Part shown: positions 30,524 through 35,498 of the stretch, piece by piece
Layout: each line of letters opens with the position of its first letter
Numbering within the stretch: the stretch's first letter is position 1
DNA from: Convolutriloba macropyga
Taxonomy: Eukaryota
Assembly (NCBI RefSeq): GCF_964194025.1
Contig: NC_134476.1
Span: 60,636,001-60,700,000 of the forward strand
Direction: 5' to 3'
DNA length: 64,000 nucleotides
Notes under the pieces: model-generated
The model's input: the letters and a program-made list of their open reading frames with translations, nothing else
The model's database searches: none
What the model was told of the DNA's origin: nothing
Made by a program: the position numbers and the translations under genes

Positions 30524-30750
30524 CTAGATCTGGTATCCGGCCATTCGCTTCAGGATCGAGTATCCTCCCATGCGCTTCGCCATTCCTCCAAATCCAGTCA
30601 TTCGCTTCTCAAAGTTGGAGTATCCCCCCATTCGTTTCTTCAGACCCAGACCTCCGTAGCCCCCCATTCGCTTCTCGAAGGCGCTGTAGCCCCCCATTCT
30701 CTTGGCCTCTTCATCACTGACGGGTCCGAATCGTCGGACATCCGGGGAAC
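30524..30750 (-). CDS. Neuropeptide precursor exon 2 (peptide repeats)
   Basis: SPDVRRFGPVSDEEA KR MGGYSAFE KR MGGYGGLGL KKR MGGYSNFE KR MTGFGGMA KR MGGYSIL KR MAGYQI*. A possible AATAAA lies on the minus strand at 30208-30213. Confidence 0.95.
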
Positions 30751-33700
30751 CTTAAATAATAAGTTTGTTTCACATTTTGTGTGCTGTGCGTATATGAATT
30801 AGATTAGCGTATGTAAATTATGTTGATCAGTGGCAATTGTGAAGAGAAAACTGCAAAAAATTCAACTGATTTTGTTGAATTCTGCACGACGGAAGAAAGA
30901 AAAGATTCTATATATCAAATTTTTATAAAATCGCCACAAAGCACAATAAAATTTGATGAAGTGAAGTACGTGCAAATTTATCGCTGAAATATTTTTTACA
31001 ATATGTTACTACAAATACACTATGGTACCAAAAAGCTACGTAAACCTGACGATTTTTTAAAAAGCAATACAAAGATCAAATAATATAACATTTTGAGTTC
31101 AAATTTCTTCTCTATTAACTCGAAACTACACCTTTAGCTTGGAAAGGTCTAGAAGACGGTTTGCATAGTTTTCATACAGGTTTCTCATGACGTCTGCGTC
31201 GTTTTCATTCCAAATTTCATACACTTTTTCTTTTGAATTTTCCAAAAAAAAACTCTGTTTTCGTAATCGTTGCTTTAAAATCGCCCATTATTTTCCAAAA
31301 GGATTCACATCTGGACAGTATTCTGGCCATTCCAGTAGCTTCCACTCGTTTTCTTGGAAAAATTGCAGATGATCTTCGATTTATGCACAGGAGCATTATC
31401 TTAATGAAAAATAATGTCCAGGAAATGCATTTTTTCTTCGCAATTTTTCAACATTTTCAAATAAACAACAGCGGTTAGCTTGTTTGTACACTTAACAAGC
31501 AATTTCCGTCCATCTGATTGTATTGCACACCAAACATATATGATCGTTTATCTGAACAAACTTTTTGTTTTTTTTTCAAGAAATCTCGTTCCACTTCTTC
31601 AAATACAAGGCTTTCGCTCGTGACGCCTGGAGCTTGTTACCTTTTTGATATCGTTTGTATGCATGCTGCTTACTAGATCGTGATTATAAGGTGAGTTGCT
31701 TTGGATTTTGTCCTTGAAAAATGAACATTTCGAATGGCAACCGCGTGACAAACAGTACAAGATTAAAGCAGCCCAACCTTCTTTTCTGTGTAATATAGCG
31801 GATAGAATTGGAATGAAATCTCGTTTAAAACTTCAAAATTTCACGCAGTTCTTGATTTAGCGCAAAGCAAATGTTTTGAGTAAAAGTAACGCTTAAAGAG
31901 CACAAATTGAGCTGTACGTAGCTTTTTGGTACTATAGTGTATGTATGGAATAGGTGATTAATTAAGTTCTCATTTAAGAAAAGAAGCAGTTGTTCTGATT
32001 TCTGGGAAAAATTCGGCCATGATTAGCTCAACTAAGTGCAAGTTGGAACTTTGAGCAAACTGCTAATCAATTCTGCTATTGCAAAATCAACATTTGTTGC
32101 AGATGCTAAAACAAAAGCAGAGCAAAAACTAGAGTGATTATTTTTGAGCTCATTGTCAAATGATTTATAACAATGTAGATTATGTTTCTGAATCATTACT
32201 AGATAGGATTTGAGTGGTTTTAGCAATGAAATTTTGTGTTATGTAATTCAAATAATGGAAAAGATCTGATATGCTCATAAGATGATTAGCAGTGGCTTAG
32301 CTCGTAGACAAGTGGCGTTTTTGTTTGTTCTTTCATTGGAAATTATCCCACAGACGCGGATTGGTTTGATAAGGTCAAAAATGGCGAATAAGTTTTTAAA
32401 AAGCTGGTCAGGCAATCAAAAATCCTTCGTTTTTCCACTGGTTGCTTCTGCTGACGTGCTTCTTAACGGCTTTTAACAGAGATTGCATTTTGTTTTGATT
32501 TTTTTCGGTGAAAAAAAATATAACAGCAAAAATTGATTGAATTATTTTTTTTTGCAACAAGTAAATTAAAATTATAACCATACGGTTAAATATACTTGAA
32601 ACAAAAATAATAATTAAAATCATTCAAACAAAATAAAGTGATGTCAACAAATTTCTTAAATCACATTATAAAATTTTCTTCCGATTGTTTTCTTCCTAAA
32701 AATAAAAATAACTTTTAAAAGCTCCTACGTTACTATTCAAAGGAATTTTTTCATGTTGTGAGAGCAAGAAATCATTCAAGGCTTTCTTAAAAACGTTTCC
32801 ATTTTTTGCCAACCGAAGCCACTGTGGTAACTTATTCCATTTTTGTACGCATTGACGAACGATCGAATTCATTCCATAGCTGGTTTTGGCATTTTGTCTA
32901 ATTTTCAATTGTTTTGTTCGAGTATTTTGATGAAGACTCAGATACCCGTGAAAACTTTCACAATTTTTTGGCCCGCCTATATCATATTGAAATTTGATTA
33001 GCGACATTTTTGCTATTATTAGCTCAGCTGGTAGGGTCTTTGTCTGGATTAGCAGATCTCTCGCTTTGTCATATTTTTTTGCGTAGAAAGCACACTTTTT
33101 TACCCCAGTTAATCTGTCGATTAAGGCGTTTTAGGTTTTTTGCAGATAAATTTTGAAAAAAGATTGCCGAAAATGATAAGTGTGAAAGCACAAGTGATTT
33201 TAGAAGAAGAATGCGCGCGTTCAGGGGAATTAGATGTCTTATTAAGTAAATTGATCTAATAGCATGAGCCATCTTTTTTAAGATTTTATTCAGCTGCTCA
33301 TCGAAACTAAGATTCCTGTCAATTTGAATACCAAGTTATCTGCAACTTTTTTCTGTTGTCAGAACTTCGTTTTTGTAAAAAAAAAACAGATCCGAAATCA
33401 GAATTATCGAGCGAGAAAAATATTAATTCGGTTTTGTTTGTATTCAAAGTTAGTTTGTTCATCTCTACATATTCTTCTGTTTTTTGTAAATTTTCCATGA
33501 CTTTTCCATGTAAGCTACTTCTCTCTCCACAACAGACAATACTGGTGTCATCTGCGAATTGAATCACTTTTTCCGTTGTGTTTATATTAGATGAAAAATA
33601 TAATTAGATGAATTAGCTCAGTTATCAAAATTCAATGCTTCTCTATGAATTTTGCAAATCAGACCAAAAAGTATTGAAAAATGTCAGCCTATCTTAAGTT

Positions 33701-35498
33701 GCTTCAAAAATTAACCGGTGGTAAAAAAGACGTATAACAATCTACCTGAAATATTTTTGGACAGCTAAAAAGTTTTCTCATCCTAAAAACTGAACTTAAT
33801 AATTCTGGACACCGCTTATCTTATTTACAAGAAATTTTTAGCTCGTCTTTCTCTCTCTCTCACACACACTCTCTCCTTCCGCTCGACAATTACCGTCATA
33901 ACAATATATGTTTCCTTAAGTCCAATTTTCCTTGCTGTTTTTTGTAGAGTTTCTGGTGTAGGGGACTTTCCAATTGAAATCTCCTAAAAATTGAAATCTA
34001 AAAAATTCGTTTAATTAAAAGCTGAGAAGCGGTAAATTTTTGATTTTTCGATTCAATTTTGGAAGCAATAGTTTGTATATTACAGGAATAAGCAATTTCG
34101 ATTCCGAGTCGTCTAGTCTCACTTATAAATTAAGGGCGAGAAAAAGGTTCATGACAAAGATTACCTGAAGTTCACCTGTTTTCCTGAAGAATTGTTATCC
34201 TAAGCTGTTTTTCCCAGATTGTGCTAATGTAGGAGCTAATTGAACGTACATAGTTCTGTTTTTTTTGTTCCCTGTAGAAAATATATTTCACAGTCACACG
34301 TTCATCCAAAAATTGGCCCTTGTTTTAATACCTTAGCAGAATAAATGTTTATCATTTAAAATTGCAAAATAGACTTTCTTGTAAGATATAACTTTTCCTT
34401 CTATTACGAATCGTGGGATATCTTTTATAGCAAAACTAAGTTTTGACATTAAAACTTTTCTATGACTCATAATTCCAACGAAAAGTTGCCGCAAGGTGTG
34501 TATTTACACATTTCTGTAGCAACAGAAGAAGTCAAACATCAAAAGACAAATTTTAAAGAAATTCTGTGAACATGAGCAAAACTATCATTTAATTCAAGTT
34601 TTGTTTGCTAAATTTCAAATATATTGAAACCGTGTGTGTTAGTCAGCTGAGGGTTTGCATACCGGCACTTTTTGATATGTGAGCTTCCCGAATTGGATTC
34701 ACCTATTGTCAATTGTTTTTATGCCGATAGCTGTTACAAAATATGATGACAAATTGCTCGTTTATGTGACATGTTATAGTTGGGAAGGGAATTAAGCACA
34801 GGAACATCAAAGTCAGACATTGACTTATGCGAGATAGTGAGAGTTTGAATGAAATGATGTTAGAAGAACAAATGTATATTAAGGAACTTGGCTCTTAGTC
34901 GCTGCCGAAATGTGATAAAGATTTATTGAAGTTTTACATTAAGAATAGCAAATACGTATTTTTTGTAGTGCGATTCAATCATTTGAATCAGAAAATAAAG
35001 TTGTCATACTTTTTCCAACTGAATCTGCTGCTAGAATTAACATGAATATTATAAAATTTGGTTTTAGCGCAAATGTTTGGTAATATATTGAAAGCATTAC
35101 TCTATTAAAAACGAGCCACTTAGATCTAATAGTGGTCTTCCAGTCGGAGTATTTATTCGAAATGAACTTTACCAAATTAAAATCTTGATGCCTTTTTGGT
35201 TTCAATACTGCTCTAGAAACTAATTATGATCCAACCCCAAATATTTTATGCTGACGTGGGTCAAATAGCTTCGCTATAGTCTTGGCAACAAAAGCACAAT
35301 ATAGAGAATAGATTTACTTGATTACTAACCCATCAAATTCCCGAGAGGTTGGCCGAAATCATAGATGGCTCTGGTTTCCACATCCACTGGGTAGGTTTCC
35401 TCGGTTGCCCGAGCGCCCTGCCCGAAAAGGATTGCGAAACCCAAGAGAAGGAGAAAGCCCGCCATGAGCAAGTTTCCTTGGTTCTTCATTTGCTGCAT
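30524..35498 (-). CDS. Multi-copy neuropeptide precursor (M-x-G-Y/F peptides; MxGFG-like), 2 coding exons, 131 aa: join(35498..35330, 30750..30524)
   Basis: Exon 1 encodes a signal peptide and exon 2 encodes six KR-flanked related peptides. Donor G|GTTAGT and acceptor TTTAAG|GT are both phase 1 and reconstitute GGT (Gly). Total length is 396 nt including the stop. Confidence 0.92.
31018..31939 (-). mobile_element. Tc1/mariner DNA transposon relic (internally deleted) in the neuropeptide intron
   Basis: 25-bp TIRs CACTAT(G/A)GTACCAAAAAGCTACGTA with TA on both sides. Decayed DDE motifs VWCAIQSDG, IIFH*DNAPVHKS and LLEWPEYCPDVNPFGK*WAILKQR. Confidence 0.92.
32650..33600 (-). mobile_element. 5'-truncated L2/CR1-group LINE (RT C-terminal half), frameshifted
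   Basis: IQFADDT, LTLNTNKTELIFFS, YLGIQID, LLKSLVLSHL and WNKLPQWLR...FKKALNDFLL. Confidence 0.9.
35330..35498 (-). CDS. Neuropeptide precursor exon 1 (signal peptide + pro-region)
   Basis: MQQMKNQGNLLMAGFLLLLGFAILFGQGARA|TEETYPVDVETRAIYDFGQPLGNLM-G has a hydrophobic core and an A-R-A cleavage motif. The start could alternatively be the ATG at 35489. Confidence 0.88.

Follow-up and report, generated by a model that had tools for sequence, protein, structure and literature searches.

We analyzed a stretch of 64,000 nucleotides (nt) from the acoel Convolutriloba macropyga, referred to here as the window (NCBI RefSeq assembly GCF_964194025.1, contig NC_134476.1, positions 60,636,001 to 60,700,000 of the forward strand), in which an earlier note made from the letters of the sequence had described a hidden, two-exon neuropeptide precursor gene. 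For this species a chromosome-level assembly of 1.18 Gb is available, and the GC content of the window is 36% as compared with 35.5% for the chromosomes shown (PMC13650328). Our results indicate that the locus is very probably the single gene for an MxGFG-type multi-copy precursor in C. macropyga, with a secreted product that carries six non-amidated peptides beginning with M-x-G-aromatic. The following features were located, with positions counted from the first letter of the window.

35330 to 35498, minus strand: coding exon 1, 169 nt, with the start codon, the signal peptide and the first part of the pro-region, ending in phase 1 in front of the donor site.
35406 to 35498, minus strand: predicted signal peptide, residues 1-31, from hydropathy and the -3/-1 rule.
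35340 to 35375, minus strand: pro-region motif TRAIYDFGQPLG, residues 42-53, invariant in three species.
30751 to 35329, minus strand: phase-1 intron of the GT..AG type, 4579 nt, with a decayed reverse-transcriptase remnant (read from the sequence; weak RVT_1 match).
30524 to 30750, minus strand: coding exon 2, 227 nt including the TAG stop codon at 30524-30526, with the remaining pro-region and the six peptides.
30731 to 30736, minus strand: dibasic RR site, residues 62-63, found as RR in two of four species.
30527 to 30697, minus strand: peptide array, residues 75-131, with MGGYSAFE, MGGYGGLGL, MGGYSNFE, MTGFGGMA, MGGYSIL and MAGYQI.
30208 to 30213, minus strand: AATAAA hexamer some 310 nt 3' of the stop codon, read directly from the letters and possibly serving as polyadenylation signal.

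When the two minus-strand exons (35498-35330 and 30750-30524) were joined by script, the resulting 396 nt remained in frame and encoded a protein of 131 amino acids (aa). This product is 100% identical, over all 131 residues, to XP_075253694.1 (LOC142345507, TaxID 536237), which is annotated in C. macropyga as an "uncharacterized protein". The start codon of exon 1 lies at 35498 and is preceded, at a distance of 9 nt, by a TAG in the same frame; the donor reads G|GTTAGT, and the translated exon is identical to residues 1-56 of the NCBI protein. The acceptor in front of exon 2 reads TTATTTAAG|G, and the product of this exon is again 100% identical to the 131-aa NCBI protein of the species (P0001 in the comparisons below). 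The spliced gene model of the earlier note is therefore correct. Its description of the gene as hidden applies to the prokaryote-style track of open reading frames (ORFs), from which both exons are absent; NCBI already holds the model.

The intron interrupts the pro-region just 3' of the conserved motif TRAIYDFGQPLG. Within it, a weak match to RVT_1 below the Pfam cut-off was seen at 33322-33567 on the minus strand, as well as a pair of 33-nt inverted repeats (31015-31047 and 31910-31942) that are 91% complementary and 862 nt apart. These repeats may delimit a small non-autonomous element.

The signal peptide was assessed by simple hydropathy and a -3/-1 heuristic. A hydrophobic core extends from L10 to F25 and is followed by an A-x-A site, so that cleavage is likely to occur at ARA|TEE; the R-A pair before this site does not vary among three orthologues. 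The pro-region stretch is acidic, as had been described, with 9 Asp/Glu against 3 Lys/Arg, while its RR site and the motif had been overlooked. The six peptides are separated, in order, by KR, KKR, KR, KR and KR. All six begin with M-x-G-aromatic, whereas the full M-x-G-F-G and the corresponding M-x-G-Y-G are found in one copy each (MTGFGG and MGGYGG). Since none of the copies ends in Gly, none is expected to be amidated. Both the secreted character of the precursor with its six named peptides and their non-amidated state were read in the same way in the earlier note. Translating the whole window in six frames gave six matches to the pattern [KR][KR]-M-x-G-[FYW], each of them in exon 2, while 0.02 occurrences are expected from shuffled sequences. 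No paralogue of the precursor was found within the window, and a Pfam scan of the precursor returned no family.

Among the peptides described from acoels by Thiel et al. (2018, Mol Biol Evol 35:2528, PMC6188537), MxGFG(amide) is one of four multi-copy types restricted to this group, and its members are amidated, non-amidated or mixed depending on the species. The family named in the earlier note hence exists, and the supplementary precursor file of the same paper lists "Cmac_607.1 MxGF peptide", in which the start, the pro-region, the six peptides and the C-terminus are the same as in the product of the window gene. Cmac_607.1 and XP_075253694.1 are the same protein, for which the genomic structure is the sole addition from the window; the published transcript is now tied to a chromosomal locus and an exon structure by our analysis. 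Evidence at the peptide level is also available: in the MxGFG row of Table S2, the entry for C. macropyga is 1*, where the asterisk stands for the detection of at least one processed peptide by liquid chromatography-tandem mass spectrometry (LC-MS/MS), which was made on whole-animal extracts (PMC6188537).

Like the window gene, the precursors of the acoel MxGFG family contain a signal peptide and tandem short M-x-G-aromatic peptides between dibasic sites. Four of the window peptides depart from the full motif in that the aromatic residue is followed by Ser or Gln. A precursor of Childia submaculatum with an "amidated MFGYG peptide" is filed under MxGFG in the same supplement (PMC6188537), in which Tyr replaces Phe as in the window peptides. 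Tyr at the aromatic position is thus accepted within the family, and the earlier suggestion that MGGY represents a distinct form of its own, not yet described, does not hold. The find is already known, given that the precursor, the family to which it is assigned and the evidence for its peptides appeared in print in 2018 and that NCBI holds the gene model; the identical earlier description takes away the novelty claimed in the earlier note and leaves its call standing. In agreement with that note, our literature search found no paper naming a receptor for MxGFG or MGGY peptides.

Orthologues were obtained from three further sources. P0002 comes from two European Nucleotide Archive (ENA) assemblies of a relative, ERZ25071366 and ERZ25878734 (loci L001 and L002), P0003 from short contigs of the metatranscriptome type (L003 and L004), and the more distant P0004 from Logan contigs (L005 and L006). 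In transcript contigs of relatives, the ATG is preceded by 312-678 nt. P0004 was the sole further orthologue in a profile search with the three-species alignment against 1.84 billion representatives. Other weak matches of this search, such as P0005, are repeat-peptide proteins matched on their KR-M periodicity and were not counted as relatives. In P0005 (302 aa), an unrelated multi-copy precursor, MGPQ(D/S)WA(D/N)F is repeated about 12 times between KR or KKR.

All three orthologues have kept the six peptides in unchanged order. P0001 to P0003 have identical MGGYGGLGL and MGGYSIL copies, and MAGY(Q/H)I is common to all four proteins. In the peptide region, Nei-Gojobori estimates against the orthologues gave a proportion of nonsynonymous differences (pN) of 0.02-0.09 and a proportion of synonymous differences (pS) of about 0.66-0.68, which is saturated, with ratios of the corresponding rates (dN/dS) of 0.01-0.06. 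The signal peptide, by the same method, diverges freely (pN 0.44-0.49). Judged from these sequence comparisons, this is the pattern expected of a precursor in which the products and not the scaffold are under selection. Moreover, each of the six paracopies is conserved individually and not homogenized, which argues for a constrained function of each peptide. While none of the six window copies is expected to be amidated, two copies of P0004 end in G-KR (MVGYGNL-G and MTGFGNL-G), which fits the mixed amidation of the family.

The conservation of TRAIYDFGQPLG equals that of the peptides themselves, and the segment may be an additional product. Its counterpart in P0004 reads TRAIFEFGQPL, giving the consensus TRAI(Y/F)(D/E)FGQPL. 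The boundaries of the segment are a monobasic Arg and the RR site, the latter being RR in P0002 and RQ in P0003. Predicted cleavage at RR would divide the pro-region into TEET...SPDV and FGPVSDEEA; it would yield AIYDFGQPLGNLMGSPDV, or a longer form from Thr32, plus FGPVSDEEA. The segment was not among the predicted peptides of the precursor. When the pro-region (residues 28-72) served as the only query, no proteins other than P0002 and the precursor itself were returned, so that the pro-region is not a module common to other precursors. We put forward, as a tentative proposal that we hold to be rather unlikely, that TRAI(Y/F)(D/E)FGQPL is a seventh product with a function of its own, either as a signaling peptide or as a sorting or processing element, and, separately and with the same reserve, that the intron of C. 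macropyga marks a datable gain or loss.

In the relative, the coding sequence forms one uninterrupted ORF of 384 nt (L001:8001-8384 and L002:8001-8384), as opposed to the 4579-nt phase-1 intron of C. macropyga; tblastn matched each of the two window exons to this ORF. In L001, the stop codon is followed at about 330 nt by a run of ten A, with ATTAAA located 50-70 nt before this run, and a TATA-like box is present upstream. No target-site duplication longer than 8 nt was found around the L001 copy. When the window was compared for synteny with the loci L001 and L002 of the relative, nothing matched besides the gene itself. The difference could be the result of intron gain or intron loss, or the intronless copy could be a processed retrocopy.

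The proposed maturation of the precursor follows the established steps of prohormone processing by signal peptidase, convertases and carboxypeptidase. The two coding exons would be spliced over the 4.6-kb phase-1 intron, and the predicted signal peptide would direct the 131-aa product into the secretory pathway, where signal peptidase would cut after Ala31. Prohormone convertases would then cut after KR and KKR, and probably after RR too, and trimming by a carboxypeptidase of the E type would strip off the basic residues. Six peptides with a common N-terminal M-x-G-aromatic would be released and, having no C-terminal Gly, would not be amidated. We infer that they act as neuronal or neurosecretory signals via a receptor, most likely a G protein-coupled receptor.

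C. macropyga is photosymbiotic and has many secretory cells, and a precursor processed exactly as described might supply gland, epidermal or digestive secretions that act in mucus, defense or communication with the symbionts, the peptides then not being neuronal. As a point in favor of this, the published mass spectrometry (MS) was made from entire animals (PMC6188537). We nevertheless regard this explanation as improbable. A multi-copy arrangement of very short peptides (6-9 aa), set between dibasic sites, is typical of neuropeptide precursors. Every single copy has been conserved among species in which synonymous sites are saturated, and unlike the usual antimicrobial peptides, those of the precursor lack a cationic or amphipathic character. 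Furthermore, the authors of the family place it among the neuropeptides (PMC6188537). A somewhat smaller likelihood is given to the view that bilaterian achatin (GFGD/GFGN) is represented in acoels by MxGFG/MGGY in strongly altered form, with signaling through an achatin-type receptor. The achatin precursors are also multi-copy, and their Gly-Phe-Gly core recurs in one window copy, MTGFGGMA; the common GFG motif was remarked on by Thiel et al., whose Table S1 lists no achatin precursor for any acoel, leaving this slot empty (PMC6188537). Against this view, GFG is found in only one of the six copies, and the window peptides have 6-9 residues with Met first and variable C-terminal tails, in contrast to the achatin tetrapeptides known from protostomes, ambulacrarians, Xenoturbella and nemertodermatids. 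In the transcriptome-based Table S1, an achatin-type receptor is listed among acoels only for D. longitubus and not for C. macropyga, and the authors treat achatin and MxGFG as separate (PMC6188537). Our profile search and Pfam scan revealed no similarity to achatin beyond the tripeptide. Copies of a tetrapeptide G-F-(G/A/F)-(D/N) between basic sites, as in the achatin family, do not occur in the precursor, where GFG is present once.

That the join of the two exons is a chance reading or the trace of a dead gene has a negligible probability. Neither exon is long enough for the threshold of the ORF list, and the intron holds retroelement debris, as might be expected under this explanation, but an identical protein is annotated, a published transcript-derived precursor spans the junction, and orthologous transcript contigs continue straight across its position. 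Together with the strong purifying selection, the annotation and the published precursor rule it out. Some points nonetheless weigh against the assignment of the locus to a gene for secreted MxGFG-type neuropeptides. The call of the signal peptide comes from a simple heuristic and not from SignalP, the label "neuro" comes from the type of molecule and from the name given by Thiel et al., and the MS detection in Table S2 is stated per precursor, as at least one peptide. In addition, the machine-read text of Cmac_607.1 deviates from the window product at three short places, namely inside the signal peptide, at one R of the RR site and in the letter order of MTGFGGMA. Since other entries of the supplement text contain impossible letters, these deviations are probably reading errors and not allelic or assembly differences.

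Elsewhere in the window, a run of long ORFs on the minus strand (683-5413) gave matches to DUF1759 (gag-like), to the Pao retrotransposon peptidase (A17) and to reverse transcriptase, and looks like a copy of a BEL/Pao-type long terminal repeat (LTR) retrotransposon split into several ORFs. On the plus strand, an ORF of 586 aa with an N-terminal match to zf-C2H2_jaz was found at 9738-11498, just 3' of an assembly gap of 200 N (9030-9229).

With the precursor, the family and the peptide evidence public since 2018, the value of the locus as a discovery is small. The additions made by our analysis are likewise small and consist of the arrangement of the exons, the conservation of each single paracopy, the conserved pro-region motif and the difference in intron content between species. 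The label "uncharacterized protein" in NCBI could be exchanged for the family name. If the interpretation of the intron is true, the coding intron present in C. macropyga as compared with the relative would represent a datable gain or loss inside a neuropeptide gene. Our literature search found no paper reporting a deorphanized peptide receptor in acoels, and the six conserved paracopies provide a defined set of ligands for receptor screening in this group.

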